The translations under genes and the position numbers were made by a program. Under the pieces are notes generated by a model. The model saw only the letters and a list, made by a program, of their open reading frames with translations. It ran no database searches and was not told the DNA's origin. This document shows positions 980 to 18,800 of a DNA stretch of 64,000 nt, one piece after another. Positions within the stretch are counted from its first letter, which is position 1. Each line of letters begins with the position of its first letter. The DNA is taken from the sequence record OR228459.1. One strand, given 5' to 3'.

Positions 980-1040
980 CATAGCAAGAACAATGCTCAA
1001 GCCCACAGGGTGCGGAGGTGTATTCGTTAAAAGCTAAATG
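980..1040 (+). ncRNA. Putative small RNA, ACCC-N-GGGTGC family, copy 1
   Basis: Core GCCCACAGGGTGC at 1001-1013; own promoter; no ORF follows; ends approximate. Confidence 0.5.
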
Positions 1041-1056
1041 CGAATGATTATCATTT
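1036..1056. promoter_or_regulatory. Fur box between convergent copies 1 and 2
   Basis: aaaTGCGAAT-g-ATTATCAttt. Confidence 0.65.
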
Positions 1057-1111
1057 CGCTCATATGATACATTTCCGCACCCTCTAGGGTCTCCGCTTTC
1101 TCGCGTCTATA
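1055..1111 (-). ncRNA. Putative small RNA family copy 2
   Basis: Promoter TTGACG(1145-1140)-17-TATAAT(1122-1117); core ACCCTAGAGGGTGC at 1090-1077; ends approximate. Confidence 0.5.
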
Positions 1112-1295
1112 TAGTAATTATACGGTAATGCGGTTTATGCGTCAAGTACTTTTTTAAAGAAAATCGAAAATAATTTAGTACTATATGTATATAAGGAAGG
1201 AAAAAGAATTTTCAAAAAGTACTTGCATTCTAATTTAACCTATTGCATAATAGCTACATCGAAACGAGATACACAAACACATTAAGGAAAACGAT

Positions 1296-1529
1296 ATGAT
1301 TCGCATTGTTCGCATTAATTACTCTACCGGTGAAGCTGATAAAGTAGCGGTTATTGTATCAGAAAAGAATGATGATCATCTACACAATACGCTGATGCGT
1401 TTTGTTAGTGCGGTTGACCGTTGGGCTAGTATTGAGTACTTAGAAACGTTTAAAGTCCCTGCCGTCCAGCTTAACGGGCATGATATTAAAGCAATTTGGA
1501 ATGCTGACGAAATGATCGCGAACATGTAA
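1296..1529 (+). CDS. Hypothetical early protein
   Basis: ORF with TAAGGA RBS and upstream promoter. Confidence 0.8.
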   Translation: MIRIVRINYSTGEADKVAVIVSEKNDDHLHNTLMRFVSAVDRWASIEYLETFKVPAVQLNGHDIKAIWNADEMIANM

Positions 1530-1620
1530 TTATTTCAAGTACTATCAAAATTTACTTGACTTACTTTGATAGTACTTTATAATACTTACATACAAACGAA
1601 GTACTATTAAGGAAAGCATT

Positions 1621-1752
1621 ATGATCACTATCGAGAAAATCCGTTTAGCAGTAGAAGAACTGATCGCGGCTGGCTGGATTGTCGCAGAAAGTGAAGAAGA
1701 AATTAACATTGTAGTAAATGGTATGTATTCAGTTATGACAAACGTGGAGTAA
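1621..1752 (+). CDS. Hypothetical protein (43 aa, MITIEKIRLAVEEL...)
   Basis: Read by hand; TAAGGA RBS and promoter cassette. Confidence 0.75.
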   Translation: MITIEKIRLAVEELIAAGWIVAESEEEINIVVNGMYSVMTNVE

Positions 1753-1834
1753 GTTAGTATTAAAAGTACTTGCATTTACTTAGCGAGTACTTTATAATAC
1801 TTACATACAAACGAAACACTATTAAGGAAATATC

Positions 1835-2452
1835 ATGGAAAACATTATCGACGTTATCAAGTCTGTTTCTTATGCTGATCTGAATGAAGCACAAAAAGAA
1901 AAAGCTATTGAGATCATGCGAGAGTTAGAGAATCAAGAAATGACTCCGTTTTGGTCTGTAGATATTACTGATCAATGGAAAGAAACTTTAGACACTGAAT
2001 ACGGCATTACTGATGCAGTGATTTATTGGTCTGGTTTTTGTTCACAAGGTGACGGTGCATCGATTAGTACTGAATACTATATTGATATTGAGAAGTTTTT
2101 ACGTAAATGTAAAGCGTGGTCAAAATTCCGTGTACTGCACAAAATTATTGACCGTGAAGAAATTCATGCTAAGATTGATCGTAGCTCAAGCCGTTACAAT
2201 CATGAAAACACTGTAAGCGGTAGCGTAGAGCTTGATTATAACATTGATTGGACGGCGAAGCAGGAAAGCGAAGCTGAACGCTTAGAAGAATTTTTGACCG
2301 AAACTATTCGCGAACTTTCTTGTAAGCTGTATAAAGAACTTGATAATGAGAATGATTATCAAAACAGCGATGATGCCCTTTGGTCTACCATTGAAGCAAA
2401 TGAATATGATTTTGCTGTAAACTCAAACGGCGACGTTTTGCGTATCGCCTAA
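1835..2452 (+). CDS. Acidic hypothetical phage protein (YWSGFCSQGDGAS motif)
   Basis: ORF, RBS, promoter; motif recalled from other phage hypothetical proteins. Confidence 0.8.
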   Translation: MENIIDVIKSVSYADLNEAQKEKAIEIMRELENQEMTPFWSVDITDQWKETLDTEYGITDAVIYWSGFCSQGDGASISTEYYIDIEKFLRKCKAWSKFRVLHKIIDREEIHAKIDRSSSRYNHENTVSGSVELDYNIDWTAKQESEAERLEEFLTETIRELSCKLYKELDNENDYQNSDDALWSTIEANEYDFAVNSNGDVLRIA

Positions 2453-2557
2453 AGTACTGACATACTGTAAAACGCTCTATAACGCATTGTAGGGCGTTTT
2501 AAGGAATAGCAGTATCATTTATCATCTTAATTAATTAAACGGCGTAGACGGCGATTT

Positions 2558-2728
2558 ATGAGCAAACAAGATATATTGAAAGGGGATGTTTTATACTGGT
2601 TAGATCCTGATGATGGGATCTGTTCTGGATGGGTAACAGTATTAGACGTTAATACTACAGTACTGGTAAAAGGTGCAACGGCAGAATTTGAAGTGCTACC
2701 CGAAGAACTTTATTCGCATGAAGTTTAA
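2558..2728 (+). CDS. Hypothetical protein (56 aa, MSKQDILKGDVLYWLDPDDG...)
   Basis: Read by hand; fills the gap before the next promoter. Confidence 0.65.
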   Translation: MSKQDILKGDVLYWLDPDDGICSGWVTVLDVNTTVLVKGATAEFEVLPEELYSHEV

Positions 2729-2757
2729 AAAGTACTTGCAAAGTAAATCTAAAAGCG

Positions 2758-2812
2758 TATAATGATTTGCATAGGGGGAAACATCTTCCCCCCACTATTA
2801 AGAGAAACGATT
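2758..2812 (+). repeat. Repeated promoter/5'-stem-loop/RBS cassette (PeSL-like), 10 copies
   Basis: TATAAT-gRtttgc-ata-GGGGGAAacatcTTCCCCC...TAAG(G)A; -10 boxes at 2758, 4715, 5069, 5834, 7903, 9429, 10584, 17305, 18160, 18857. Confidence 0.9.
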
Positions 2813-3253
2813 ATGACTATCTACTATCTGACTTATAAAACCGCCGACAATGTAACTGATGCTAATGTGACCGCAAACACGGTACAGGAAGCAATGGAAG
2901 TACTGAAAGCGGAACTACCTGATATTCAGATCGTTTGTGTAGTTGATACCGAAACGAATCTTAAAACTATTATTGACCACTATGATTATTTCCGTGGGCG
3001 TAAGTTACAGGACTGGTATCATATCGAAATAGAAACACGTGAACTACCAGAAGAACAACAGCACTTTGAGCAGGGTACTAGCATTTGGGTTACTACCGAT
3101 AAACGCATATATTTCTGTTCACGCATACACGTTAACAAGCGTGTTAAAATTGGGGCAGATTCATATAGTGGACTGTTTACAAATAGTAACCTACTAAATG
3201 ACAAGTACATAAAAGTTTATGAGCGTTTTGGAACTGATATTTACGCTTCATAA
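2813..3253 (+). CDS. Hypothetical early protein
   Basis: Start moved to the ATG after the cassette RBS. Confidence 0.8.
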   Translation: MTIYYLTYKTADNVTDANVTANTVQEAMEVLKAELPDIQIVCVVDTETNLKTIIDHYDYFRGRKLQDWYHIEIETRELPEEQQHFEQGTSIWVTTDKRIYFCSRIHVNKRVKIGADSYSGLFTNSNLLNDKYIKVYERFGTDIYAS

Positions 3254-3258
3254 TATCA

Positions 3259-3290
3259 CAAAGGGGAAGCAATTGCTTCCCTGTTTATTT
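3259..3290. terminator. Bidirectional intrinsic terminator
   Basis: GGGAAGC-AATT-GCTTCCC flanked by A and T tracts. Confidence 0.75.
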
Positions 3291-3350
3291 GTACAGTACT
3301 ATAATCTATAGATACAATACCGCACCCCGTGGGCTAATGTGTTTTCATGG
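3259..3350 (-). ncRNA. Putative small RNA family copy 3, about 90 nt
   Basis: TTGACA(3384-3379)-17-CATAAT(3361-3356); core at 3336-3322; ends at bidirectional hairpin 3259-3290; near-duplicate of copy 7. Confidence 0.6.
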
Positions 3351-3782
3351 GTATTATTATGCCAGTACTACAAACATTTGTCAATCATTATTTTCAATTA
3401 ATTTAAACGCACTGTAACACTGTATAAGGCGTTTTGTTATTAAGGTAAGCAAACGTATTGAGTACTATCTAAAAGGCCGTTGTGGGCTTGCTGGTGGCGT
3501 TGTGTTGTAGTATTGAAATATAAGGAAAATATAAAAAAGGCTGTCAATGATTAAAAAAGTACTTGACGGATTGATTTAGTACTGTCATAATGTATCACAT
3601 AGAGCGGCGGGATGGATAAACATTCCTAAGTAGACAGCCAGTAAGTCATACGAAAGACTGGTGCCGAACTGAAAGAAAGATTGAAAAGAGTTTTAAAAAG
3701 TACTTGACAAGCTGGTGGGAAATTGAGATAATGACCCCGTAGACAGCAAACAACCTAATTAAACTTTAAGAGGAAATATACA

Positions 3783-4370
3783 ATGACTACTACTACTGAA
3801 AATGCACGTGTTACCCTGAAATCTGCACTGGAAGCTGGCGACGTTAAAACCCTTGCTGTTATCCTTGCGAAAGTTGGTCATGATAAAGACGGCGTATCTA
3901 AATTGGGCTTGACTTTCTCACTGGCGGTTAAGGAAGCGAAGGAAGTACTTAAAGAGCAAGCCAAAGCAGCAGAAGAAGCTGCACGTCAGGCAGCAGAACG
4001 CCGCGAAGCTAAAAAGGCTGCACGTCAAGCCGAAGAAGAAAAGCGTCAGGCTGAGATCAAGGCAGAAAAAGAAAATATGCTCAAGTTCCTCATGGATACG
4101 GTTAACGGTATGGGCTTAGACCTTGAGGCGGCAGAAGCGGCAGCAGAAGCGGCAATTGTTAAAAAGTACGGCGATGTTAACAAAGTACCTAAGTATACTT
4201 TTAACCGTGTAGCGGTGATTGTAGACGGTAAAGAATACAACATGCCAACTTCTGGGAACATGGTAGAAGTACTTAAAAATGCACTTGAAGCAAGCGGTAA
4301 ATCGCGTAAAGAGTTTATCATCGAACACGCGAAAGACAAGGCAGAAGCGGAAGCGGCATTCGCTGAATAA
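3783..4370 (+). CDS. H-NS/StpA-like protein with altered DNA-binding loop
   Basis: Coiled coil (ERREAKKAA vs H-NS ERREEESAA); C-terminus PKY...G-NMVEVLKNALEASGKSRKEFII vs H-NS AKY...[23 protein letters not shown]; two tandem promoters. Confidence 0.6.
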   Translation: MTTTTENARVTLKSALEAGDVKTLAVILAKVGHDKDGVSKLGLTFSLAVKEAKEVLKEQAKAAEEAARQAAERREAKKAARQAEEEKRQAEIKAEKENMLKFLMDTVNGMGLDLEAAEAAAEAAIVKKYGDVNKVPKYTFNRVAVIVDGKEYNMPTSGNMVEVLKNALEASGKSRKEFIIEHAKDKAEAEAAFAE

Positions 4371-4387
4371 TAACAGTACTAAACTAT

Positions 4388-4414
4388 AGGCGGCCTAAGT
4401 GGTCGCCTTTTTTT
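4388..4414 (+). terminator. Intrinsic terminator
   Basis: AGGCGGCC-taagt-GGTCGCCT plus T tract. Confidence 0.8.
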
Positions 4415-4428
4415 AATTGGGGGATTAT

Positions 4429-4689
4429 ATGGCTGTAGGATTCGCGAAAGACGGGGCAGAACAAGACGAGATTTTAGCGGTCATAAACGCCGCTGTAAGC
4501 CACGCAAGGAATCAGATAGGGGATAGTACTATTACAAGTAGAACGCACTGCCTAGACTGTTCTAGGACTATTCCTGAGCGTAGACGGGAAGTAGTAAAGG
4601 GTGTTAAGTACTGCGTAGAGTGTCAGGCTGATCATGATAGTATATTTAAAAGAGATCCGCGTAATTGTTGGCACAGATCTATGAGATAG
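4429..4689 (+). CDS. TraR/DksA C4-type zinc finger protein (YbiI-like)
   Basis: MAVGFAKDGAEQDEI...CLDC..IPERRREVVKGVKYCVEC. Confidence 0.85.
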   Translation: MAVGFAKDGAEQDEILAVINAAVSHARNQIGDSTITSRTHCLDCSRTIPERRREVVKGVKYCVECQADHDSIFKRDPRNCWHRSMR

Positions 4690-4770
4690 TACTTGACATA
4701 CTTTCTGATTAAAGTATAATGATTTGCATAGAGGGAAACATCTTCCTTCACTAATTAAGGAAATAGAATC

Positions 4771-5043
4771 ATGCGTACACCAATGACCCGCGAAGAAATA
4801 CACACAGTACTGACAACTAACATTCAGGACTGGAAGAAATACGCAGATATTAACGAAGCTCAAGACTTGAACAATGAGCTAGATGGTGAAGATCTGGACG
4901 TAATTTGTTCCCCTGAGTTTTATGATGATATTCATTCCGATGATGATGTTTGGAATGTACTGGAAAAGCATTTCCTCGATACTGATTTAAGTATCTACTC
5001 GCGTGATACTTTTATTTTAATTCACAACATTTATAACAAATAA
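4771..5043 (+). CDS. Acidic hypothetical protein
   Basis: ORF after cassette; D/E-rich. Confidence 0.8.
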   Translation: MRTPMTREEIHTVLTTNIQDWKKYADINEAQDLNNELDGEDLDVICSPEFYDDIHSDDDVWNVLEKHFLDTDLSIYSRDTFILIHNIYNK

Positions 5044-5122
5044 TTGTTGACTTACTTATATAGTACTGTATAATGGTTTGCATAGGGGGAAACATCTTCC
5101 CCCATCAATTAAGGAAAAGAAA

Positions 5123-5332
5123 ATGACTCGATACACTGTAGAAGTACGTACTACTAAAAACATTGCTACTGATGTGATTCGTTATTATAAGATGGTTTGT
5201 GGTGTTGCTCGCCGTATTAGTAAAGCGGATTATGACAAGCTGGATCGCGAAGCTGATGGTATGGATTGTTTTTATACAGTAAACACAAAAACGCATACAA
5301 AGCAATTTAAAACATTGTCTTATTACATGTAA
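5123..5332 (+). CDS. Hypothetical protein
   Basis: Start after cassette RBS. Confidence 0.75.
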   Translation: MTRYTVEVRTTKNIATDVIRYYKMVCGVARRISKADYDKLDREADGMDCFYTVNTKTHTKQFKTLSYYM

Positions 5333-5415
5333 AAAGTTTTACTCCAGTACTTGACAATAGATGCGAGTACTGGCATAATAACTTTATTGAAACGAAATAC
5401 TATTAAGGAAATATC

Positions 5416-5805
5416 ATGGCTAATCTCATTGTTCGATTGTATGAAGATTGTTTCTACTTTTAGTATTGTGGGAAACCTATATCCGTTAAAGAGATGATCG
5501 CATCGGGCTATATGTTATCTAAGCATGATCACACTGGATTCATGGCTGAAATGGTTGCGGCTAGTTATAAGTTTGGTGAAGAATGGGAAGCACAATATTT
5601 TCCGGCTGTCAATGCAATGATTAAGCGGTTGGCAGAACACACTGAGTTTATGGAATTTTGGACTGTTTTAAAAATGGTTGACGTGAATCAGAATGGGGAA
5701 ACGTGTCAGCCATACGCACATTTTGACGCTGGGGAAGATATTAGCACAATTTGGAAATGGTTGGAAGATAAATTTACAACAATTAAAATTGCAGATTACT
5801 TGTAA
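5416..5805 (+). pseudogene. ORF interrupted by in-frame TAG at codon 16 (5461-5463)
   Basis: RBS-backed ATG 5416 is in frame with ORF 5494-5805: MANLIVRLYEDCFYF*YCGKPISVKEM... Confidence 0.65.
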
Positions 5806-5889
5806 AAGTACTTGCATTACTATCTGAAAAGCGTATAATGGTTTGCATAGGGGGAAACATCTTCCCCCACTAACTAAGAGAAGAATATC

Positions 5890-6270
5890 ATGGCTAATCA
5901 AATCACTCCAGCACAGACCTTCAATAAATTCAGTACTGAAATCGTATTGAAAGAGTATGTGCCAGATTATGGTTGGACTGATGCATGTGTATGCACTGAT
6001 GTAGCAGATGCAAAGCAACGCATTAAAGATTATCGTGCGGAGGGTTTACAGGTTAAAACTGCCCGTCGCCGTGTACTTAACAAAGATGCTTTCTTATGTC
6101 AAGCTCTTTTAAACTTCTGCCGTGACTACTATCGCCGTACTGGTGGATTATGGCCTAATGAGGTTGAAGTACTGAAATCTAACGGTAAAGTAAAATTTAC
6201 CTTGACTTTAAAAGAAATTGAGGAAGTACTTGGTGATGATTGTTTTTTAGTAACTTCACAGCCAGCATAA
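5890..6270 (+). CDS. Hypothetical protein
   Basis: ORF after cassette. Confidence 0.8.
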   Translation: MANQITPAQTFNKFSTEIVLKEYVPDYGWTDACVCTDVADAKQRIKDYRAEGLQVKTARRRVLNKDAFLCQALLNFCRDYYRRTGGLWPNEVEVLKSNGKVKFTLTLKEIEEVLGDDCFLVTSQPA

Positions 6271-6339
6271 AAAAGTACTTGACACATAACGGGGATATGA
6301 TACAATATCCCCATATTGAAAAGTAATGGAAGTACTGAA

Positions 6340-6531
6340 ATGAATTATCAAAAGGTTAGCAAGCGAGTAGTTGAACTCTCTAAGAAAGCACGTAAAGAGT
6401 ATACCTTAGAACGTTCAATTAACAACTATCATTTAAAGCAAGGTGATAAGTTTATTGTTATTGACGAACCTTTGGAAATCGTGTATATTGTAGTTAATGC
6501 GATGATTCGTGATAAAACGAGGATTAAGTAA
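6340..6531 (+). CDS. Hypothetical protein
   Basis: ATG after GGAAG; promoter upstream. Confidence 0.7.
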   Translation: MNYQKVSKRVVELSKKARKEYTLERSINNYHLKQGDKFIVIDEPLEIVYIVVNAMIRDKTRIK

Positions 6532-6786
6532 ATGCGTACATTAGACCAACTTATTGACCCTAATACGTCAGCACGTCGATCAATGGTTACTATCGGCGGT
6601 AATGGTAAACAACACTGGAGTGGTTACATTTGCTTTATTGTTGGTGGAAAAATGTATGAGCGGGTAGTATATCACAAAGAGATTAATTATATACTATTCC
6701 GTAAAGAAGTCATAGCAGTCGATCCTACCGCCCTAAAACCGATTGCAGGGGCATGGAACAAAGAATCGCTGTACCTTACAGCTTAA
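6532..6786 (+). CDS. Hypothetical protein
   Basis: Translationally coupled ORF. Confidence 0.75.
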   Translation: MRTLDQLIDPNTSARRSMVTIGGNGKQHWSGYICFIVGGKMYERVVYHKEINYILFRKEVIAVDPTALKPIAGAWNKESLYLTA

Positions 6787-6835
6787 CCAATAAAAGGCCG
6801 CTACGTGCGGCCTATCGCGTTCTAGAGGGTATATT

Positions 6836-7024
6836 ATGAATACTGTACAAGTACTAGATGAGATTGAAAAAATTGTTGACAGTACTAACAAACGTGATAT
6901 ACTGTTATCAAGAAATAAGGCTAACCAGTACGAAAAGAATTGCGTACAATCTGCACTAGGGGGTAACTTTGAATCGCTACACTCAACCATACTTCAAGGG
7001 AATAACAACCGCCCACCAGCGTAA
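6836..7024 (+). CDS. Hypothetical protein
   Basis: GAGGG RBS. Confidence 0.6.
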   Translation: MNTVQVLDEIEKIVDSTNKRDILLSRNKANQYEKNCVQSALGGNFESLHSTILQGNNNRPPA

Positions 7025-7226
7025 AAAGAAACTACACATAGTACAGAAACGAAAGCGTAAAGTACTTAAACTTAAACCAACATATAGTTGGGGATTGTCG
7101 TGGGATGAAATCAATCACGGACTATCATGGAATCAATTATATGTTATTGGCTCAAGTGTTGGACGCTTTCATTTTAGTACTATATCACGACAAGAAACAC
7201 GTGTAAACCCATATAAAAGTACTTGA
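6969..7226 (+). CDS. Basic hypothetical protein
   Basis: TTG start with AGGGGG upstream; overlaps previous ORF. Confidence 0.45.
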   Translation: MNRYTQPYFKGITTAHQRKKKLHIVQKRKRKVLKLKPTYSWGLSWDEINHGLSWNQLYVIGSSVGRFHFSTISRQETRVNPYKST

Positions 7227-7256
7227 CATATATCCGGCTTAGTGAGATAATACTTA

Positions 7257-7310
7257 CAAGCCGGAGAAACGGCGTGACCCATAGGGTGCGAAGAAGTAAT
7301 CAGTACTTGA
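7257..7310 (+). ncRNA. Putative small RNA family copy 4
   Basis: TTGACA(7223)-17-GATAAT(7246); GCCG-gagaaa-CGGC hairpin, then ACCCATAGGGTGC at 7277-7289; ends approximate. Confidence 0.5.
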
Positions 7311-7325
7311 GAATGATAATCATTT
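7306..7325. promoter_or_regulatory. Fur box between convergent copies 4 and 5
   Basis: TGAGAAT-g-ATAATCAttt. Confidence 0.65.
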
Positions 7326-7373
7326 ACAACACTAGACAGATTTATGCACCCGATGGGTTAGATTGTTTTCATG
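7320..7373 (-). ncRNA. Putative small RNA family copy 5
   Basis: TTGACA(7407-7402)-17-TATTAT(7384-7379); core TAACCCATCGGGTGC at 7360-7346; ends approximate. Confidence 0.5.
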
Positions 7374-7500
7374 CATATATAATATCAAAGTACTGTTATA
7401 GTGTCAAGCATTTTTATTTGATAATTATTTTAAAAAAAGTCTTGCATTACTTTCTGAATAACGTATAATACTTACATCAACCACTGAGAGGAAAGAAACA

Positions 7501-7872
7501 ATGTCTATTAAGCGTATTGTATTTGGTCGCGGTGCAAGTGAAGAAGTAGTACCTGTTGAACTGATCGCGATGTTAAATGAAATGATTCGCCGTGGTGATA
7601 TTAATTTTAGTCCTGATGTAATGCCTTATGCGATTTCGTATGAGGTGCGTAAAAGTCCTAAGTACTGGAAGATTGACCGTGTAGAATTGGACAAAGAAAC
7701 CGGAGAGATTCGCGAGTTTGGGCGTAGTTCTGTTGGTGCTGTAGATTTTGAAGGGAACGTGTTTAAATCTGCCAGCTATAAAGCCGTTGCTAAGGGTATC
7801 CGTGGAAACATCTTTGTTAACAATGGTTTTAGTGCAATTACTGGTGACGGATATATTCGTTATTTAAATTAA
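7501..7872 (+). CDS. Conserved phage hypothetical protein (GNVFKSASYKAVAKGIRGNI motif)
   Basis: Resembles a widespread phage family with a GDxYKxASWKAPAK-like motif. Confidence 0.8.
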   Translation: MSIKRIVFGRGASEEVVPVELIAMLNEMIRRGDINFSPDVMPYAISYEVRKSPKYWKIDRVELDKETGEIREFGRSSVGAVDFEGNVFKSASYKAVAKGIRGNIFVNNGFSAITGDGYIRYLN

Positions 7873-7959
7873 AAAGTACTTGCAAAGTAATCTGATTAGC
7901 GTATAATGTTTTACATAGAGAGGGGAAATAGTTTCCCCTCCATATTAAGGAAAAGTATC

Positions 7960-8196: not shown

Positions 8197-8276
8197 TTAT
8201 TATCAAAAAGTACTATTGACAGAAACATGATAGTACTTTATAATACTTACATCAATTAAGCAAAGAGGAAAACAAA

Positions 8277-8582: not shown

Positions 8583-8649
8583 AAGTACTTGACAACCTTT
8601 CGGGGGTAGGATATACTATCCCCATCAATTAAGCAAAGAGAGAAACAAA

Positions 8650-11702: not shown

Positions 11703-11759
11703 CAGTACTAAGGGAGTATTATATAATACTCCCATCTTAAGAAAACAAGGAATTACAAA

Positions 11760-11984
11760 ATGTCTTTATACTCACTGGAAGTTGAACATCATAACTTTAG
11801 TACTAAAATGATTGTAAGTACTGATGCAAAAGAGAGAGAAGATCAGTACAATGAAGTTATGACATGGGCTAAAGGTTTCTATCCTGCTGGGACTATTTTA
11901 AAGGCTAAGTGGGTATCACATGAAACTAAACTTGATTTTCATTCAGCTATTGCTGGTGGTTATGAGGGGATTAAACTGTTATGA
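11760..11984 (+). CDS. Hypothetical protein
   Basis: AAGGA RBS, promoter. Confidence 0.75.
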   Translation: MSLYSLEVEHHNFSTKMIVSTDAKEREDQYNEVMTWAKGFYPAGTILKAKWVSHETKLDFHSAIAGGYEGIKLL

Positions 11985-12130
11985 AAAAAGAATTTATCTT
12001 GCGAGTACAAATGAAAGGCGGTGCACAACGTACTTTTCGTGAATGGGGTTGGTCTGCTGGTATGGCCTTTGAACAGCTTAAAAAAGATAATCCCGATGTT
12101 CAATACAAAATAGAATCAAAAGAGGCGTAA
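11981..12130 (+). CDS. Hypothetical protein (49 aa)
   Basis: Read by hand; ATGA overlap; GAGGGG RBS. Confidence 0.7.
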   Translation: MKKEFILRVQMKGGAQRTFREWGWSAGMAFEQLKKDNPDVQYKIESKEA

Positions 12131-12207
12131 TTATTATCAAAAGTACTTTACAAATATAGTAGAGTACTTTATAATACTTACATCAACTAAGCAAAGAGGA
12201 TAGGAAA

Positions 12208-12345
12208 ATGAAAGAATCTCAATACGAAGCAGTACTGGCACAGACTGGTGAAGATCTGACTACTGAGCAGTACGCTAAAATTGAAGAGATGCTTTTAGCT
12301 GGTAAATCTGTTAAAGACACTGTGAAAGCAGTTCGTAAGATGTAA
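12208..12345 (+). CDS. Hypothetical protein (45 aa)
   Basis: Read by hand; follows the promoter module. Confidence 0.75.
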   Translation: MKESQYEAVLAQTGEDLTTEQYAKIEEMLLAGKSVKDTVKAVRKM

Positions 12346-12419
12346 AATAATTAGTCAGTACTCTTGACATTATCATAGAGTACTGCTATAATTACTTTAC
12401 TTAATCAGGAGAACATACG

Positions 12420-12737
12420 ATGGCTTTACATTCAGCAATGCGAAAAACTGTTAATATCTATGCAGATAAAAACATTATGGATTGTACTCTTGGACATACT
12501 GATAATCAATATGCCATTATTGTAAAAAACCCGTTCACTGGTGAAGATTGCATTTACAGTGGACAGTACTTAGAAAGTAATTTATTACCTGCCACAAAAC
12601 GCAGTGAAATGAAAGGGTATATTACCCGGCACAGAGCAGAACGTGACATTGCAACAATCTTTTTACCCGGTCAAAATGCTCGCGTGGTAACGATGGAAGA
12701 AGCAGAGATTTTTCTTGGCAGCCGCTTTAAAGTGTAG
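12420..12737 (+). CDS. Hypothetical protein
   Basis: AGGAG RBS, promoter. Confidence 0.8.
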   Translation: MALHSAMRKTVNIYADKNIMDCTLGHTDNQYAIIVKNPFTGEDCIYSGQYLESNLLPATKRSEMKGYITRHRAERDIATIFLPGQNARVVTMEEAEIFLGSRFKV

Positions 12738-12775
12738 TATAATACTTTTATCAAATCAAGTGGAGTACTAAAAAG

Positions 12776-12916
12776 ATGATTACACCTATTGCACCAATTC
12801 ACAAGACAGTGTATAATACTTATAGTACTCCAAAGCAGCAACATATTATCGAGGAACTGAAAGAACAGAAAAAAGAAGTAAAAAGTACTGGTAACCGAAT
12901 CGATATTAAAGTATAA
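12776..12916 (+). CDS. Hypothetical protein (46 aa)
   Basis: Read by hand; GGAG RBS. Confidence 0.55.
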   Translation: MITPIAPIHKTVYNTYSTPKQQHIIEELKEQKKEVKSTGNRIDIKV

Positions 12917-12948
12917 TACTTACATCAACCACAAAGAGGAATACAAAA

Positions 12949-13287
12949 ATGGCTATTACTTCTATCTTCTGCAACACCCGAAACGAAGCACGTCAGGCTA
13001 AAATCGATTTCAACGGTAAAATTGTTGACAATGGTTCTGATGCACCCAAGGGACAGCGTTGGGAAGTACAATACGAAGTAGCCCCCGTATCTGATGCCAT
13101 CGCGGAACTTGCAGCAATCATGCAAGCGGAAGTACAAGACATGGCACTAGAAGAAGTGTCTCCACGTGAGATTATGGGTCTTCCACGTCCTGTAAGCAAG
13201 AATAAAAAAACCCGTGCTGTGATCATGAAAGATCGCAAAGGTAATTCAGTTACTGTACAGGTTCGTCGTCGCCGCATTACTGCCTAA
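12949..13287 (+). CDS. Hypothetical early protein (KIVDNGSDAPKGQRW motif)
   Basis: ORF, RBS, terminator after. Confidence 0.8.
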   Translation: MAITSIFCNTRNEARQAKIDFNGKIVDNGSDAPKGQRWEVQYEVAPVSDAIAELAAIMQAEVQDMALEEVSPREIMGLPRPVSKNKKTRAVIMKDRKGNSVTVQVRRRRITA

Positions 13288-13327
13288 CCGAAAGGGGGAG
13301 CAATCCCCCAAACTTTTAAGAGGATTT

Positions 13328-13579
13328 ATGAAGAAGCAAGTACAACTAATTAATGGTAATTTCATGCGATTGCATTATAAACCGCAAAAGAAAATCATTG
13401 AGAAAGCTACAAAGGTAGCAAATGATTTTGTTAGTGGGACAGTTCGCCCCCGTAAACTATCTAACGGATTGTTTCAAGTACTGGATATTAGCAGAACAGA
13501 ACGTATCGTAATTGATAAGGAAAAGCAAATACATTTAATGAGTCACGAAAAGTACAATGATTTTGTGAATCAGCGTTGA
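13328..13579 (+). CDS. ParE/RelE-like toxin-fold protein
   Basis: Basic 83 aa ending LMSHEKYN, the C-terminal signature of the ParE-like phage family. Confidence 0.55.
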   Translation: MKKQVQLINGNFMRLHYKPQKKIIEKATKVANDFVSGTVRPRKLSNGLFQVLDISRTERIVIDKEKQIHLMSHEKYNDFVNQR

Positions 13580-13633
13580 CAGACTACCGACAACATAGTA
13601 TAATACTTTCATCAACTAAACGATGGTTCTAAA

Positions 13634-14023
13634 ATGAAAAATATTGTTTCTGCTATCGCTATCGCTGTTATGTTTTCTTCAACTCCAGTTATGGCATACA
13701 CTGTTAATCTGAATGAATTGACAGATTGGGGAAATCAAATGCGTGATCGCTTTGCAGTACCAGACCATATCCAGCCGCAGCAAAAACAAGGTAGTGAAAT
13801 GTTATGCCGTGGGGTAATGACTAACGAGCAAACCGGACAACAAATCCGCGAACAATTCAGTACTAGTGGTGAACGTTCGGTATCGGGTAATGATATCATC
13901 TATCATGATGAAGATGAAACCGGAAGCACTACATTGCAAATTAATGCAAAAACTGGTAAAGGCTTTATTACGATGATGGACACTGAAAAAGTTATCGTAA
14001 CTGGTAATGTAGTTTGCAAATAA
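13634..14023 (+). CDS. Exported hypothetical protein
   Basis: N-terminal signal peptide MKNIVSAIAIAVMFSSTPVMA. Confidence 0.75.
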   Translation: MKNIVSAIAIAVMFSSTPVMAYTVNLNELTDWGNQMRDRFAVPDHIQPQQKQGSEMLCRGVMTNEQTGQQIREQFSTSGERSVSGNDIIYHDEDETGSTTLQINAKTGKGFITMMDTEKVIVTGNVVCK

Positions 14024-14072
14024 AGTACTAAAAAGGGGTTGACTTCGGTCGGCCCTTTTGCTATTATATATC

Positions 14073-14125
14073 CCATAGAAACAAGTTAACCCACAGGGTG
14101 GCGTAGTCCGTCCAAAATTTATTAA
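14073..14125 (+). ncRNA. Putative small RNA/leader, family copy 8
   Basis: TTGACT(14039)-17-TATTAT(14062); core TAACCCACAGGGTG at 14087-14100; the only copy directly followed by an ORF. Confidence 0.45.
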
Positions 14126-14136
14126 AAGTATAATAT

Positions 14137-14391
14137 ATGGAAATATGGAAAACAATCACTGATTCCCCTAATTATGAAGTAAGTAATTTAGGAAATATAC
14201 GAAAAATACGTGATAATAAAGGTATGGCACAAACTAATAGTAAACTTTCAGATGATGATATTAAATTCATCCGAGCTAATTTTAAAAAATGTGATCCTGT
14301 ATATGGTGGAATACCACTAGCAAAGCGATTTGGTGTATATAAAAGTACTATATACAAAATTGTACAAGGACGTGCATGGAAGCATATATAA
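14137..14391 (+). CDS. NUMOD4-HTH mini-protein (HNH homing endonuclease lacking its HNH core)
   Basis: EIWKTI...YEVSNLGNIR joined directly to SKLSDDDIKFIR...LAKRFGVYKSTIYKIVQGRAWKH. Confidence 0.7.
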   Translation: MEIWKTITDSPNYEVSNLGNIRKIRDNKGMAQTNSKLSDDDIKFIRANFKKCDPVYGGIPLAKRFGVYKSTIYKIVQGRAWKHI

Positions 14392-14394
14392 ATA
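14387..14394 (+). promoter_or_regulatory. T4-type late promoter-like TATAAATA
   Basis: Exact octamer 35 bp upstream of ATG 14429. Confidence 0.35.
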
Positions 14395-14428
14395 TATTCA
14401 TAATACCATTTTATATAAGGAGTATATT

Positions 14429-14962
14429 ATGCCGGGTAAATTTCAAGATAAAAATGGTGGGTTAATTGCAGGACATAGTGATCGCTGGTCTGATGAAAAC
14501 CGCCGTAAAAATAGTTTTAATGCTGGTGCTGGAAGTCGAGCTAGTCGAAATCAAGGACTAGGACAAAAAGGACTCGACAATACTAAAACAGATACCATTG
14601 TAGATACTTCTAGGATGAAACCAGAAGAAAAACTAAAGTACTTCCAATCTTTGGGATTACTTGGTCATCAAGAGAAAGGTTCTAAAGAGCCTCCAAAAGC
14701 AGCACCACAAAAACCAATGCCTACCGATAGTAAATCACTTATTAGTACTTTACAAGATCAATGGAAAGATGCGTTTAAAGGCGATGTACGCCATTCTAAG
14801 CGACTTATTGCAGAACTTAAGGACGTTGCCCCAGCTAAGATTAAAAAAGCTCTACAAGCTGCTTACAGGGCCACACAAGAGGTTACCGCACGTGAAGACG
14901 ACCCTCTAACAATCGTTGAATATATCAGTGATGCTATTGTTCCATTTACATATGAAGATTGA
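14429..14962 (+). CDS. Basic, low-complexity hypothetical protein
   Basis: TAAGGAG RBS at the internal ATG (MPGKFQDKNGG). Confidence 0.8.
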   Translation: MPGKFQDKNGGLIAGHSDRWSDENRRKNSFNAGAGSRASRNQGLGQKGLDNTKTDTIVDTSRMKPEEKLKYFQSLGLLGHQEKGSKEPPKAAPQKPMPTDSKSLISTLQDQWKDAFKGDVRHSKRLIAELKDVAPAKIKKALQAAYRATQEVTAREDDPLTIVEYISDAIVPFTYED

Positions 14963-15028
14963 AATAAAAGGTTGACATGAGTCAGCCTTTTTTGCTATCA
15001 TAGTCCTACACCAATAGGAGATAGTAAC

Positions 15029-15292
15029 ATGAAATACTTACTAATCATCGCCGCATTATTCAGTACTCAAGCAATGGCAACAGATATGGTTTGTAGTGCT
15101 GATGGTTTCCAAACTGTATTCAAGGTAGATGGCAACACGCTTATTGACACAAACGAACACGTAGTAGCTGAAGAAATCAGTACTGGTAAGTTTATGGCAC
15201 AAGATCAGTTCGGTGAAGTAGTTTATACTATTCACGGAAATAAGATTGTAATGCAATTCAGTGGCGTTATCAAAGAGTACAATTGCAAATGA
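15029..15292 (+). CDS. Exported hypothetical protein
   Basis: Signal peptide MKYLLIIAALFSTQAMA. Confidence 0.75.
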   Translation: MKYLLIIAALFSTQAMATDMVCSADGFQTVFKVDGNTLIDTNEHVVAEEISTGKFMAQDQFGEVVYTIHGNKIVMQFSGVIKEYNCK

Positions 15293-15483
15293 TTGTACAA
15301 GTAACACTAAAAGGATTGAAGCCCGGAGAAGATGACTACGAAACACATGTAGCCACTATTTCCGGGTTGACAATGGATGAGATTGATGGTAATATACTGT
15401 CATACATCTACGAATGGCGTAATGCAAACGGGTATTACAAAATGAAATATATTCATAAAGAGGTAATCTCATGCGATAACTAA
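15289..15483 (+). CDS. Hypothetical protein
   Basis: Coupled ORF. Confidence 0.65.
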   Translation: MIVQVTLKGLKPGEDDYETHVATISGLTMDEIDGNILSYIYEWRNANGYYKMKYIHKEVISCDN

Positions 15484-15499
15484 CACAGGAGATTACACA

Positions 15500-15715
15500 A
15501 TGCCAACTCATTCACTAGTACTTAATGGGATTCGATTCAAAATGACTGAGGGTGCATTGCAAAGTACTAACACGCAATTAGTACTTGATAAACTCACAAA
15601 AGAACAATGTGATGGTATCCTTCGCGAAGCAAATCGCATTAAGTCAACTGTATCAAATCACCCGGTTAAGCGTCAATTACTTCAGGGGATCATTATGGGA
15701 TGTTTGCGTAAATGA
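15500..15715 (+). CDS. Hypothetical protein
   Basis: AGGAG RBS. Confidence 0.75.
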   Translation: MPTHSLVLNGIRFKMTEGALQSTNTQLVLDKLTKEQCDGILREANRIKSTVSNHPVKRQLLQGIIMGCLRK

Positions 15716-15864
15716 TTTATCAACAAATTATTGCAGTACTGAAAACACTTGACTACGGAAATGCAATCCGTTATGCTAGTGCTAACGCCTTTGAACTCGC
15801 TCAAATGTATGAGCAAGGTAGTACCATTGATGAGCTGGTGGAGGTTTGTCTCAGTCATAAATAA
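15712..15864 (+). CDS. Hypothetical protein (50 aa, MIYQQIIAVLKTLDYG...)
   Basis: Read by hand; ATGA-type coupling. Confidence 0.6.
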   Translation: MIYQQIIAVLKTLDYGNAIRYASANAFELAQMYEQGSTIDELVEVCLSHK

Positions 15865-15890
15865 TCTTGTAATTATTACAGGAGATCATT

Positions 15891-16163
15891 ATGACAGACT
15901 TAAACGCAATCAAGCAATGGAGTACTATCCCATTAAACGAACTACCGCAACTACTAAAGCAACAAGGTTTTCAATTCGTACCACGTTTTAGTACTGAAGA
16001 TCATCGTATCTTCGTATCTCAAGACGGACAATATTTGATTAATATTATCCGTAATACTGGAAAAGTATACAGTACTAAAAATCAGAAATCACCTTTGCAT
16101 ATTTTTGGTATTCGTAATGGTGAGATCCCAAAAGGTGCAGATAAAGCATTCAGAACTGAATAA
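15891..16163 (+). CDS. Hypothetical protein
   Basis: AGGAG RBS. Confidence 0.75.
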   Translation: MTDLNAIKQWSTIPLNELPQLLKQQGFQFVPRFSTEDHRIFVSQDGQYLINIIRNTGKVYSTKNQKSPLHIFGIRNGEIPKGADKAFRTE

Positions 16164-16232
16164 TAAAAAAAGGGTTGACTTAGGTCGGCCCTTTTTGTTA
16201 TTATATACTTATTGAAGCGAAGGAGATAGAAC

Positions 16233-16823
16233 ATGTACGTCACTAAAGCAGCAAAGAAACACTTAAAAGAACTTGACAAGTTACCAACTAATAAACAAAT
16301 GTTAAAGTACTGTCGAGAAAATTTAACACGTTTGGGTAAGGGATCAAGTCGTGAAGTTTTTGCATTATCTGATACATTAGTAATCAAGATCGCTTTAGGT
16401 GGTGTAGGTGTAAAACAGAATGAAAATGAGATTCGTATCTGGAATCTAGTTAGTTATTCATTTACTGGATTTAAGAGATCATTCGCTAAAGTACTGGTAA
16501 ATTCATGCCACTGGAAAGAATTCTATATCGTCATGGAGCGTTTAAATACACAAACCGTGTCGCGGTCAATCTTTAATACAAGTACTGTTAGAGCGTGGCG
16601 TATGGATCGTACCGCAATGCATCCAATTGCTAAACGTATATTCAAAGATGTACAAGCCACTGATGATAATGCTTTTACTAATAACATAGCAGATATAACT
16701 CCACGAAATATGGGAACATCAAAAACAGGTGTTGTCAAGATGTTGGATTATGGTTTTAGTACTCCTATATGGAATGGACTCGCTAACGGTACATTAAAGA
16801 ATAGAGAATTACTTATAAAATAG
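16233..16823 (+). CDS. Ser/Thr protein kinase-like protein
   Basis: LGKGSSREV, VIK, NENE, VMERL, DITPRN, DYG kinase motifs. Confidence 0.8.
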   Translation: MYVTKAAKKHLKELDKLPTNKQMLKYCRENLTRLGKGSSREVFALSDTLVIKIALGGVGVKQNENEIRIWNLVSYSFTGFKRSFAKVLVNSCHWKEFYIVMERLNTQTVSRSIFNTSTVRAWRMDRTAMHPIAKRIFKDVQATDDNAFTNNIADITPRNMGTSKTGVVKMLDYGFSTPIWNGLANGTLKNRELLIK

Positions 16824-16885
16824 TGCTTGACTACTTTATGCTGGTGGGATATACTTATCCCATCAACAACAAAGAGGAATACAAA

Positions 16886-17131
16886 ATGTTTAAAGTACGT
16901 AAATGGTCTGACTCTAACTCCCGCCCATATGATGTTGTTTATGTAGATGATATTCGAAACAATATCCACTATCAACCCGGCGTAGAATTTAGTACGATTG
17001 AAGGTGCTTATAAACATAAAGAAGTACTAATCAAAAGTACTGATGAAGATAGTATAGAATTTATCCGTAATCATTGGCCCACTGATGGTGCCGCTGATGA
17101 GGATAATTCAGAAGAACCAAAAATAGATTAA
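16886..17131 (+). CDS. Hypothetical protein
   Basis: Start after GAGG RBS. Confidence 0.75.
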   Translation: MFKVRKWSDSNSRPYDVVYVDDIRNNIHYQPGVEFSTIEGAYKHKEVLIKSTDEDSIEFIRNHWPTDGAADEDNSEEPKID

Positions 17132-17175
17132 TAAAAAGAGGTTGACTTCGGTCAGCCTTTTTTGTATTATATATA

Positions 17176-17225
17176 TCAAGAAAACAGCTAACCCACAGGG
17201 TGCATAAATCCGTCTTTCAAATGTA
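17176..17225 (+). ncRNA. Putative small RNA family copy 9
   Basis: TTGACT(17142)-17-TATTAT(17165); core TAACCCACAGGGTGC at 17189-17203; ends approximate. Confidence 0.5.
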
Positions 17226-17363
17226 TATTTTTTCATCGAAGTACTAAAACGAATACGAAACAAATAAATTTCAAAAAGTACTTGACCACTATTACCGATT
17301 GTCGTATAATGTTTTACATCGAGAGGGGAAATGGTTCTACTCTCTAACTTAAGGAATTAAATC

Positions 17364-17885
17364 ATGATTACTACTCCAGTACGCGATATGTTTAACGTTA
17401 ACCCCAACACTGGTATTGCTTATGGATACATCAACGCGAACAACGTAAACAGTGAAGTACTGAATGAAATTTTCTGCAATGGTATTGATGTAGCTCGACT
17501 TGAAGCAGATATTGACTTCGCCAAACGTTATGATTTCGTAGTACCTGATCAAAAGGAATCAGAAGATTATACTGCTTATCTTGAGCGTGTACAATCCGAT
17601 ATGCTTGACTTCCTTAACAATCTGGGCGATGATGTGATGGAAGAAGTGGAAGCACATGATCGCGAATATGAAGAGTTTACAGGTCATGTACACGCCGCCA
17701 CAGTAGATAAGACTACAGTACTTTATAACACTGATAACAATACTATCTGTGTTATGGATGGCATCAATGTTGGTTTTTTCTATGCTTGCTCTCCATGCTG
17801 CCCGAATGCTGGTGATCTTGATAGTGCTGGTGGAAGTGTAGAAACTTACGATGTACCTGTAAGCTGGCGTGAACTGGATTACTAA
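17364..17885 (+). CDS. Acidic conserved phage hypothetical protein (NTGIAYGYI; ACSPCCP)
   Basis: ORF after cassette. Confidence 0.8.
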   Translation: MITTPVRDMFNVNPNTGIAYGYINANNVNSEVLNEIFCNGIDVARLEADIDFAKRYDFVVPDQKESEDYTAYLERVQSDMLDFLNNLGDDVMEEVEAHDREYEEFTGHVHAATVDKTTVLYNTDNNTICVMDGINVGFFYACSPCCPNAGDLDSAGGSVETYDVPVSWRELDY

Positions 17886-17944
17886 TTGACAACAACAAAG
17901 GGATAGTATATACTATCCCTAACTTAAGAAAAGAGGAAATCAAA

Positions 17945-18124
17945 ATGGTTCACGTTGATCTTGAAGTACTGAAAAAAGTATGGTACGACATTGGCTATAA
18001 AAATATTAGCTGGACGGATAACCAGTACATCGAGCTTAAGGCACTGGATAACTGGCAGCGTAATGAAGTACTGAAAGCACACAAAAAAGGTGTAGATGAT
18101 CGCTTTAACTTTCCTGTACTTTAA
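17945..18124 (+). CDS. Hypothetical protein (59 aa)
   Basis: Read by hand; GAGG RBS, promoter. Confidence 0.75.
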   Translation: MVHVDLEVLKKVWYDIGYKNISWTDNQYIELKALDNWQRNEVLKAHKKGVDDRFNFPVL

Positions 18125-18216
18125 TAGAAAAAAGTACTTGCATAGTATTCTGATTACTGTATAATGTTTTTCATAGAGAGGGGAATGGTTCTTCTCTCTA
18201 AATTAAGGAAAACATT

Positions 18217-18399
18217 ATGACTAACAAATATCGTACTCAGTTCTTCATGGTTGATGGTGCTCGATTAACTGCTGCTGACGTACACGAGTACTACGGAGTG
18301 AGCATTGATGATCTTCTGGTGATGCATGAAGATGAAACACAATTCTTCCATGCTCATGGGTACGAGGTTAAAGTAACACGCTGCCCAGCATACAATTAA
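18217..18399 (+). CDS. Hypothetical protein
   Basis: ORF after cassette. Confidence 0.75.
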   Translation: MTNKYRTQFFMVDGARLTAADVHEYYGVSIDDLLVMHEDETQFFHAHGYEVKVTRCPAYN

Positions 18400-18444
18400 T
18401 CATTTGGGGAGAGAGGTAATACTCTCCCATATTAAGGAACGTCC

Positions 18445-18711
18445 ATGAAACTGATTAACACACTAACGCGATTGTTTGGCACTGATAATGTTGACGATTG
18501 GAACGATGTTAACGATGAAGATAATGTGATTGATTACATCGTTATCTACCACAACAATGATGGTGATAATGAGTGTGAGCCTGATTACTTCCTACGCCAC
18601 TACGACAACGGATCATACCAGCTTAATGATCTCAGTGGCAACGTAATTCACACTGGTAATGATCTGGCAGTACTAAAGAAAGTACTAAAGAATTTACCAA
18701 AAAGTAATTGA
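18445..18711 (+). CDS. Asp/Asn-rich hypothetical protein
   Basis: TAAGGA RBS. Confidence 0.75.
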   Translation: MKLINTLTRLFGTDNVDDWNDVNDEDNVIDYIVIYHNNDGDNECEPDYFLRHYDNGSYQLNDLSGNVIHTGNDLAVLKKVLKNLPKSN

Positions 18712-18741
18712 CTATAATCTGCTGGTGGAGTATTATATATC

Positions 18742-18800
18742 CATTGGCAGATAAGCCACTAACCCACGGGGTGCATAGATCCATCTATTGGATTTAAGTA
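18742..18800 (+). ncRNA. Putative small RNA family copy 10
   Basis: TTGACT(18708)-17-TATTAT(18731), Chi in spacer; core TAACCCACGGGGTGC at 18760-18774; ends approximate. Confidence 0.5.

Follow-up and report, generated by a model that had tools for sequence, protein, structure and literature searches.

We analyzed a 64,000-nt stretch of DNA (the window) that corresponds to positions 1 to 64000 of the genome of fENko-Kae01, a Klebsiella jumbo phage (OR228459.1, 360,105 bp); window positions 900 to 12000 are 100% identical to that record, with equal coordinates. The left part of the window is one copy of the direct terminal repeat (DTR), which is annotated in OR228459.1 at 1-19736 and 340370-360105 (19,736 bp each) and is likewise given in the genome paper (PMC11218385). 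Most DTR genes encode proteins of fewer than 200 aa and nearly all are annotated as "hypothetical," and the repeat contains ~30 promoter matches scoring at least 11 of 12. Dispersed among these genes is a repeated unit, the subject of this analysis, in which a sigma70-type promoter is followed at short distance by the hairpin-forming core CCC-N3/4-GGGTG. The nearest relatives of fENko-Kae01 are Salmonella phages Munch, 7t3, SE_PL, and PHA46, and more remote relatives are the RaK2-like jumbo phages of Klebsiella, Escherichia, Cronobacter, Pectobacterium, Erwinia, Serratia, and Yersinia.

The core CCC-N3/4-GGGTG matches exactly ten times in the window, at 1002 (+), 1089 (-), 3333 (-), 7278 (+), 7357 (-), 9128 (+), 11026 (-), 14090 (+), 17192 (+), and 18763 (+), in agreement with the ten sites given in the initial annotation of this DNA; we number these copies 1 to 10 from left to right. 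All ten lie inside the 19,736-bp DTR. The extended core AACCC-N3/4-GGGT has 6 matches (0.25 expected) and ACCC-N3/4-GGGT has 8 (0.39 expected), and in neither case was the count reached by any of 100 shuffles. A covariance model of the unit, run on positions 1 to 341000 of fENko-Kae01, returned only these ten copies (22.7 to 62 bits), with the next match at E = 0.66. The units are thus confined to the two terminal repeats, 10 in each, and there are therefore 20 copies per packaged genome. Upstream of every copy is a TTGAC(A/T/G)-N17-TAnnnT promoter scoring 10 to 12 of 12, and the end of its -10 hexamer lies 20 to 26 nt from the first stem base, which bears out the earlier claim of a near-consensus sigma70 promoter with a 17-bp spacer at each copy. 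The further claim that the stem is kept and the loop varies also held, the loops among the window copies being ACA, AUA, ACG, AUC, and UAGA.

A covariance-model search of related jumbo phages, as the initial annotation had proposed, recovered 77 copies in the early/DTR regions of 7 phages (5 groups), and the motif is conserved across them. By phage, the copies number 10 in fENko-Kae01, 12 in Yersinia phage fHe-Yen9-03, 12 in Pectobacterium phage CBB, 11 in Klebsiella phage RaK2, 12 in Serratia phage BF, 12 in Cronobacter phage GAP32, and 8 in Escherichia phage phAPEC6; this set is the basis of most family counts below. An exact-pattern scan of 2.9 million IMG/VR contigs found 27 stretches in 13 contigs, nearly all of them jumbo genomes (345 to 378 kb), and the covariance model added 53 further copies on eight of these 13 contigs, for a family total of ~130 copies across 15 genomes or contigs. 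Beyond these 13 contigs, the exact-pattern scan of IMG/VR viral contigs found no member of the family, and in RaK2 itself the 6 strict matches of the whole genome are the 6 in its 24-kb early region. By this distribution, the unit family is a hallmark of the RaK2-like clade and of its terminal/early region.

The unit appears to be new. Rfam 15 gave no match at gathering scores in the 64-kb window and, with the threshold relaxed to E = 5 over positions 1 to 20000, none at any of the units, which accords with the earlier remark that the core was not recognized as a known RNA family; a search for tRNA and tmRNA was negative. The element goes unmentioned in the genome papers on fENko-Kae01 (PMC11218385) and CBB, a literature search with motif strings returned unrelated primers only, and blastn, a search blind to short matches, found no host counterpart in E. 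coli genomes. Judged on sequence, the RNA family has not been described before, and its layout is unusual: the units are fused to promoters, restricted to terminal repeats, and often arranged in exact convergent pairs.

A sigma70-type promoter is present at all 77 units, with a 17-bp spacer in 56 and a TG before the -10 in 48, and the distance from the -10 end to the conserved stem (P2) is 20 to 28 nt, with a mode of 25. Ahead of P2 lies a second hairpin, P1, with 3 to 5 bp and a purine-rich loop of 6 to 8 nt (GAGAAA, GCGAAA, AGAACAA, AGAUAA). Its first paired base is 9 nt past the -10 in 43 of 70 units, ~2 to 3 nt from the usual start site, and P1 lies 1 to 3 nt from the presumptive transcript 5′ end; about a dozen units, among them copies 5, 7, 8, and 9, lack it. 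A linker, mostly CUA, leads to P2, which consists of RCCC, a loop of AYR or UAKA, and GGGU; loops of 3 nt predominate (56 units), with 4 nt in 20 units and 6 nt in a single unit. On the 3′ side of P2 follow an invariant GC, a five-nt purine-rich stretch, U, and a YRUCU(AU) tail; the center of the tail reads Y, R, Y, Y, Y over five alignment columns, of which three are without exception in 77 sequences. P1 and the conserved tail go beyond what the initial annotation described, as do the restriction to the DTR, the placement of ~40% of units in precise convergent pairs, and the ~45% of units that are unterminated and point toward a gene.

All four P1 pairs vary on both sides, in 16 to 30 sequences each, and 36 distinct P1 stems occur. 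Computed on an alignment that was not fitted to P1, the covariation is 0.326 versus 0.159 in shuffles (0 of 500 as high) and at most 0.12 with slid partners; in a separate hairpin-versus-shuffle test, 17 of 30 units formed at least 4 bp, compared to a shuffle mean of 6.6 and a maximum of 13. P2 is 99.3% paired, and its outer pair is A-U in 47 units and G.U in 29, opposite an invariant U; its innermost C-G has changed to U-A on both sides in two independent sequences. The unit flanks are asymmetric (UA left, GC right) and always oriented with the promoter. Because P1 covaries, P2 alternates between A-U and G.U against an invariant U, the loop varies between 3 and 4 nt, and the conserved flanks are asymmetric, it is very likely that this is a real family under selection on the transcribed strand, where RNA would be the simplest form in which the unit acts.

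The tail columns form a wobble-compatible complement of the invariant GGGUG, and an alternative hairpin of the form GGGUGC-R, tetraloop, U-S-YRYYY, which excludes P2, is 89% paired versus 30 to 57% in slid controls. This support is one-sided in that the GGGUG partner never varies, and predicted energies favor the alternative hairpin in 34 of the 77 units and P2 in 43; a GGGUG/YRYYY hairpin as a second conformation is thus a possibility. An all-against-all column scan for long-range or pseudoknot pairs returned none besides P1 and the wobble-compatible columns. RNAfold closed a longer hairpin between GUGC and the GUAC of a downstream AGUACU in copies 3, 7, and 10 and one CBB unit, and RNAalifold on the units here termed antisense (see below) recovered P2 alone; AGUACU starts 15 to 50 nt past GGGUG in 42 of 77 units, against a background of 21%. 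We also considered a mini-open reading frame (ORF) behind the Shine-Dalgarno-like GGGUG and rejected it: an NTG stands at a fixed position in 36 of 77 units, the ORFs have 1 to 45 codons, and there is no conserved peptide.

The units occur in three genomic contexts. Convergent pairs account for 30 of the 77 units (~40%), with 2 to 3 pairs per phage, and in fENko-Kae01, CBB, BF, and fHe-Yen9-03, the four whose records begin at the left end of the genome, the first pair is found ~1 kb in from it. The partner core stands at exactly +59/60 in compact pairs or at +70 to +82 in pairs with a central palindrome, and read-through of one unit into its partner is predicted to fold as a 15- to 30-bp hairpin. 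Antisense units (about 8 to 10 of 77) end at the bidirectional terminator of the upstream gene, and their entire ~95 nt, including UAGUACUGUAC, is conserved in 7 of 7 phages, with folding z scores of -2.6 to -4.5 versus shuffles. The layout of a small-RNA gene, with a promoter, no ORF, an intrinsic terminator, and conservation of the whole unit, is found in copies 3 and 7 and their counterparts in the 6 other phages. Together, convergent and antisense units (~55%) have no gene downstream. The remaining ~35 of 77 (~45%), the sense units, lack the terminator of that layout and continue into a second promoter, AAAAAGTACTTGCAT-N17-TATAAT, and then a gene; this promoter normally lies 35 to 90 nt after the unit. 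Many sense units start at a composite in which the -35 hexamer lies within the terminator hairpin of the upstream gene (GGGGTTGACTTCGGTCnCCCCTTTT). The initial annotation had seen a multicopy small-RNA family here, and that description stands insofar as the units are individually promoted, noncoding, conserved, and located in the earliest-entering part of the genome; the ~45% (4 of 10 here) that lack a terminator and run into a second promoter and gene may have a 5′-leader role.

Two convergent pairs lie in the window. Copy 1 (946-1036, + strand; 52.2 bits) has its -35 at 946-951 and its -10 at 969-974, a P1 stem of AGCA/UGCU, and a P2 of GCCC-ACA-GGGU at 1001-1011, followed by the tail; it converges with copy 2 (1054-1145, - strand; 22.7 bits), which has its -35 at 1145-1140, its -10 at 1122-1117, a P1 stem of CGC/GCG, and a P2 of ACCC-UAGA-GGGU with a 4-nt loop. 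Copy 4 (7223-7312, + strand; 40.7 bits), with its promoter at 7223-7251, P1 stem GCCG/CGGC, and P2 ACCC-AUA-GGGU, converges with copy 5 (7323-7407, - strand; 56.2 bits), which has its promoter at 7407-7379, no P1, and P2 ACCC-AUC-GGGU. Midway within each pair is a palindrome: AATGATTATCATT at 1043-1055, between copies 1 and 2, resembles the core of a Fur box and fits 14 of 19 consensus positions, counted by hand, and AATGATAATCATT at 7312-7324, between copies 4 and 5, is surrounded by 19 bp that match the Fur consensus at 16 of 19 positions, also counted by hand. The 19-bp Fur box consensus is GATAATGATAATCATTATC, and in both palindromes (AATGATWATCATT) the central 12 to 13 nt match the center of that consensus exactly. 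Similar AATGAGAATCATT arrays are present in the leftmost pairs of BF, Yen9-03, and RaK2, and the compact pairs of CBB and GAP32 lack a central palindrome. The annotated coding sequence (CDS) ENKO_017 (7223-7468) takes as its TTG start the -35 hexamer of copy 4 and covers both promoters and both units of this pair; it is probably not a gene, and we correct the annotation accordingly.

Copies 3 and 7 are of the antisense type. Copy 3 (3256-3384, - strand; 59.6 bits) has its promoter at 3384-3356 and its module at 3357-3299, and copy 7 (10948-11077, - strand; 62 bits) has a consensus promoter at 11077-11049, its module at 11050-10992, and no P1; both carry the UAGUACUGUAC element. As had been noted, they are near-duplicates with their own promoter and terminator, directed against the flow of the neighboring genes. 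The terminator hairpins are at 3263-3282 and 10956-10975; reading on the - strand, the bidirectional terminator at 3282-3263 predicts an RNA of ~94 nt for copy 3 (folding z = -3.6) and the terminator at 10975-10956 one of ~95 nt for copy 7 (folding z = -3.1).

Copies 6, 8, 9, and 10, all on the + strand, are sense units. In copy 6 (9066-9162; 49.9 bits), the -35 at 9073-9078 lies within the upstream terminator hairpin, the -10 is at 9096-9101, the P1 stem is UGGC/GCUA, and P2 is ACCC-AUA-GGGU; a second promoter, TTGCTT-N16-TATAAT at 9180-9207 (+), precedes ENKO_022 (9238), with no terminator between it and the unit. Copies 8 (14032-14124; 52.6 bits) and 9 (17134-17226; 52.1 bits) start at terminator/promoter composites (14032-14067 and 17134-17170, respectively), lack P1, and share the P2 ACCC-ACA-GGGU. 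Copy 8 is directly followed by ENKO_036 (14137-14391), and copy 9 by a second promoter at 17282-17310 and then ENKO_045. Copy 10 (18708-18797; 53.6 bits) has its promoter at 18708-18736, a P1 stem of UGGC/GCCA, and P2 ACCC-ACG-GGGU, and a second promoter at 18835-18863 leads into ENKO_049. The earlier statement that nine copies are not followed by an ORF is accurate in that an ORF directly follows only copy 8 (ENKO_036, 14137), but copies 6, 9, and 10 each have a gene 110 to 175 nt further downstream, separated from the unit by a second promoter and by no terminator, and copies 4 and 5 fall inside the annotated CDS at 7223-7468. ENKO_036 (84 aa), the sole ORF directly behind a unit, contains a NUMOD4 motif (E = 2.5e-8); NUMOD4 is a DNA-binding module of homing endonucleases, and ENKO_036 may be the remnant of a mobile insertion.

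Terminator/promoter composites are found at 9066-9101, 14032-14067, 16167-16204, and 17134-17170. In each, the -35 TTGACT forms part of a UUCG-type terminator hairpin (GGGGTTGACTTCGGTCnCCCC), in either its loop or its stem, and the T-run leads into the spacer and the -10, so that the end of one transcript would be the start of the next. Three of the four drive units, and the composite at 16167 drives ENKO_043 directly. A second conserved leader, at 17317-17345 and 18869-18897 and, in phAPEC6, downstream of the units at 9653 and 16296, follows AAAGTACTTGCA-type promoters. It has an apparent mRNA start of CAUCGAGAGGGG(G)AAAUGGUUCUCCC and a hairpin near the 5′ end, ahead of the ribosome-binding site, and is common to the Klebsiella and Escherichia phages.

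We compared the units with known phage and bacterial systems. Like lambda oop-type antisense RNAs, copies 3 and 7 are self-contained at ~95 nt and ORF-less, have a strong promoter, end at an intrinsic terminator, and run against the flow of neighboring genes; unlike them, they stop at the bidirectional terminator of the neighboring CDS and do not overlap it, and they are part of a family of 10 copies that have a 5′ module in common and for the most part are not antisense. Lambdoid nut sites (boxA plus boxB) and HK022 put sites are also small nascent-RNA hairpins near early promoters, oriented with transcription and carrying invariant sequence features, but the units have 4-bp stems and more than half have nothing downstream to antiterminate. 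The GCTCTT of the nut boxA (CGCUCUUA / UGCUCUUUA) is absent from positions -15 to +125 of all 77 units, and where boxB has a 5-bp stem and a purine-rich, GNRA-like loop of 5 nt, the P2 loop has 3, 4, or 6 nt and the P1 loop 6 to 8 nt. CsrB/RsmZ sponges and RNA anti-CRISPRs resemble the family in presenting many copies of one small hairpin, here on promoter-driven, ORF-less phage units with presumably high expression. In contrast to CsrB/RsmZ, each RNA would carry a single site, and the sites are spread over many genes; the GGA that a CsrA/RsmA sponge has in the loop of each hairpin occurs after P2 in 34 of 77 units and never in the P2 loop. Type I-E and I-F CRISPR repeats, which we treat as a lead only, have longer and different stems.

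T7 RNase III processing hairpins and Correia-type elements share with the units their nature as conserved, hairpin-forming intergenic repeats in an early region, and convergent read-through would yield duplexes of 15 to 30 bp; they differ in that each unit has its own promoter and single units have just 4-bp stems. The distantly related Pseudomonas phage PA5oct has an early-transcribed long DTR with two highly expressed noncoding RNAs (ncRNAs), ncRNA001 and ncRNA002, of 236 and 451 nt and without annotated promoters (PMC7318152). PA5oct thus sets a precedent for abundant ncRNAs in an early-transcribed DTR, but the covariance model had no match at either PA5oct locus, and these ncRNAs are not homologous to the unit family. 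Save for the generic small-RNA gene layout of copies 3 and 7, no testable defining feature of the compared families is apparent in the units.

We tentatively read the ten units as stand-alone, very early, high-copy ncRNAs that would present an invariant hairpin to a partner, a statement that, taken as a whole, we rate somewhat below even. Its parts differ: we lean slightly toward free short RNAs as the products, and decoy action is rather doubtful. We take the units as free-RNA genes because no other reading fits all three contexts and because more than half are without a gene to regulate yet are the best conserved. Host sigma70 RNA polymerase would transcribe the units from the DTR, the site of the strong early promoters. 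P1 would protect the 5′ end of the transcript, a role that we infer from the freedom of its stem to vary, and the invariant P2, together with the sequence on either side of it, would serve for sequence-specific recognition, most simply by a host or phage RNA-binding protein. The RNAs of copies 3 and 7 would be kept short by the intrinsic terminator and those of the pairs (copies 1 and 2, copies 4 and 5) by the head-on partner unit; the RNAs of copies 6, 8, 9, and 10 would run on into the next promoter or gene and would yield a free module only after processing. At 10 units per repeat and 20 per packaged genome, all on near-consensus promoters, the hairpin would flood the cell within minutes, and copy number, promoter strength, and location lead us to propose a stoichiometric role, either titration or recruitment of a factor.

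Several points weigh against this reading. We found no transcriptome of a RaK2-like enterobacterial phage in the literature, and transcript starts, ends, and abundance are all inferred. The ~35 of 77 units that are read without a terminator into a second promoter and gene (copies 6, 8, 9, and 10 here) may be plain leaders. Pfam scans of 20 DTR proteins gave no RNA-related, RNA-binding, or antitermination candidate for the partner. The P2 pattern would look no different if the hairpin formed in DNA, on the non-template strand displaced within the transcription bubble, and the invariant stem has just 4 bp. A more far-reaching version of the free-RNA reading, which we regard as improbable, is a dedicated RNA arm of host take-over, in which the unit promoters, about ten per repeat and twenty per genome, would have a 5′-protected hairpin RNA as their sole product and this RNA would capture a conserved enterobacterial RNA-binding factor or defense sensor, the pairs would add a burst of double-stranded RNA (dsRNA), and the whole would be a clade-wide decoy family; such a family may be switchable via the competing P2 and GGGUG/YRUCU pairings.

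The units could instead act in cis during transcription, in the manner of nut, put, or ops, with the P1-P2 RNA or a non-template hairpin loading a factor onto the polymerase, or altering it, and so causing pausing or terminator read-through. Such an element would be promoter-proximal and oriented with transcription, as the unit always is (20 to 28 nt past the -10), and would have work to do in a DTR that is dense in terminators, some of them overlapping unit promoters, and where genes follow sense units without an intervening terminator; the possible GGGUG/YRYYY hairpin (89% paired versus 30 to 57%), which excludes P2, would offer a switch. However, that hairpin is the more stable in just 34 of 77 units, ~55% of units face no gene, convergent partners stand at exactly +59/60 or +70 to +82, and antisense units stop at a terminator ~50 nt later. 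A boxA-like sequence occurs in 0 of 77 units, the 3- to 4-nt P2 loop is no GNRA-like pentaloop, and the stems are far shorter than those of put RNA, all of which makes action in cis unlikely in our view. The gene-less units are also the difficulty for a 5′ leader of early mRNAs, in which the unit promoter would be the upstream one of two in tandem, the module would stabilize or regulate the long mRNA of the gene that follows, and the units that face no gene would have arisen as by-products or by decay. These units are undecayed, the antisense type being conserved end to end in 7 phages and the pairs keeping their exact spacing, and at ~55% of the family they fit free RNAs better. Copies 6, 8, 9, and 10, among the ~35 of 77 members that run into a gene without a terminator, do have the arrangement of leaders, with P1 1 to 3 nt from the presumptive 5′ end, like known stabilizing hairpins, and a Shine-Dalgarno-like GGGUG sequestered in P2; yet the gene normally has its own promoter 35 to 90 nt past the unit, and no conserved start codon or ORF comes after the Shine-Dalgarno-like sequence. 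We give the leader explanation a small chance.

The paired arrangement raises a different prospect, that the inverted pairs are what functions and the units are dsRNA makers or transcription barriers, whose complementary RNAs or 15- to 30-bp hairpins would occupy RNase III or a dsRNA sensor or whose polymerase collisions would insulate segments or pace DNA entry. The 30 of 77 paired units, at 2 to 3 pairs per phage and with the first pair ~1 kb from the left end in four records, the abutment of compact pairs at exactly 59 to 60 nt, and the central palindrome in the leftmost pairs agree with this idea. It leaves aside the more than half of units that are single, and mere complementarity needs neither an invariant P2 nor a covarying P1, so that we think it quite improbable as the main function. 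Finally, a dimeric protein could bind ACCC-N3-GGGT as duplex DNA and shut the promoters, a proposal close to the palindromic DNA operator that the initial annotation had offered as its alternative. Strong promoters do carry the core, an inverted repeat of short length, at about +15 to +30, an AT-rich stretch comes after the unit, and the two CG-to-UA changes are symmetric. Against an operator, half-site spacing is 3 nt in 56 units and 4 nt in 20, the left outer base is A or G where the right is always T (breaking the symmetry in 29 of 77), and the core shifts over an 8-nt range relative to the -10. Conservation of the flanks is asymmetric (UA left, GC right) and always follows the direction of transcription, and P1 covaries with G.U pairs that exist in the transcribed sense only. 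P1 covariation, the A-U/G.U alternation against an invariant U, the variation in loop length, and the asymmetric flanks thus disfavor the operator, and we consider a duplex-DNA site very unlikely. As a variant of it, the promoter and G-cluster might form an R-loop replication origin, which we rejected since a convergent orientation makes no sense for origins.

The palindrome AGTACT is greatly over-represented in the window, with 241 copies in 64 kb, of which 122 are within the DTR, where the runner-up palindromic hexamer has 28. Its density in the DTR is 4.1 per kb within CDSs and 11.7 per kb outside them, and across 50 kb of the structural-gene region 77 copies were counted where 13.5 were expected; among relatives, Yen9-03 has 119 in 18.5 kb and RaK2 has 163 in 24 kb. 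The hexamer is placed immediately 5′ of the -35 (AAAAAGTACTTGAC/TTGCA) and of the -10, often in pairs 20 to 21 bp apart, and peaks 20 to 29 nt past the GGGTG of units, a distribution that suggests a DNA-level binding or modification site; the signal seems to extend through the whole genome. The window also contains 14 promoters of the form AAAGTACTTG(A/C)(C/A), spanning 1216-18828, every one within the DTR. Between 64 and 341 kb, OR228459.1 is annotated with NAD-salvage enzymes, three NUDIX hydrolases, a macro-domain protein, an ADP-ribosylglycohydrolase, and an NAD-dependent deacylase, along with an RNA ligase, IF-3, a ribosome-associated inhibitor, two sigma factors, and a second protein kinase, the first "putative protein kinase" being ENKO_043 in the DTR. 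As annotated, this gene set is rich in functions for interference with host RNA and NAD metabolism.

RaK2-like jumbo phages are in use for phage-therapy work, and to our knowledge no ncRNA has previously been described for them. The RNA family reported here, which has covariation support, turned up in each member that we examined, exclusively at the strongest promoters of the terminal repeat, and it now comes with exact coordinates, a structure model, and three context classes. Titration of a host factor, if true, would make these RNAs a novel type of phage take-over tool; action in cis, if that is what the units do, would make them a promoter-proximal control element of a new sort.

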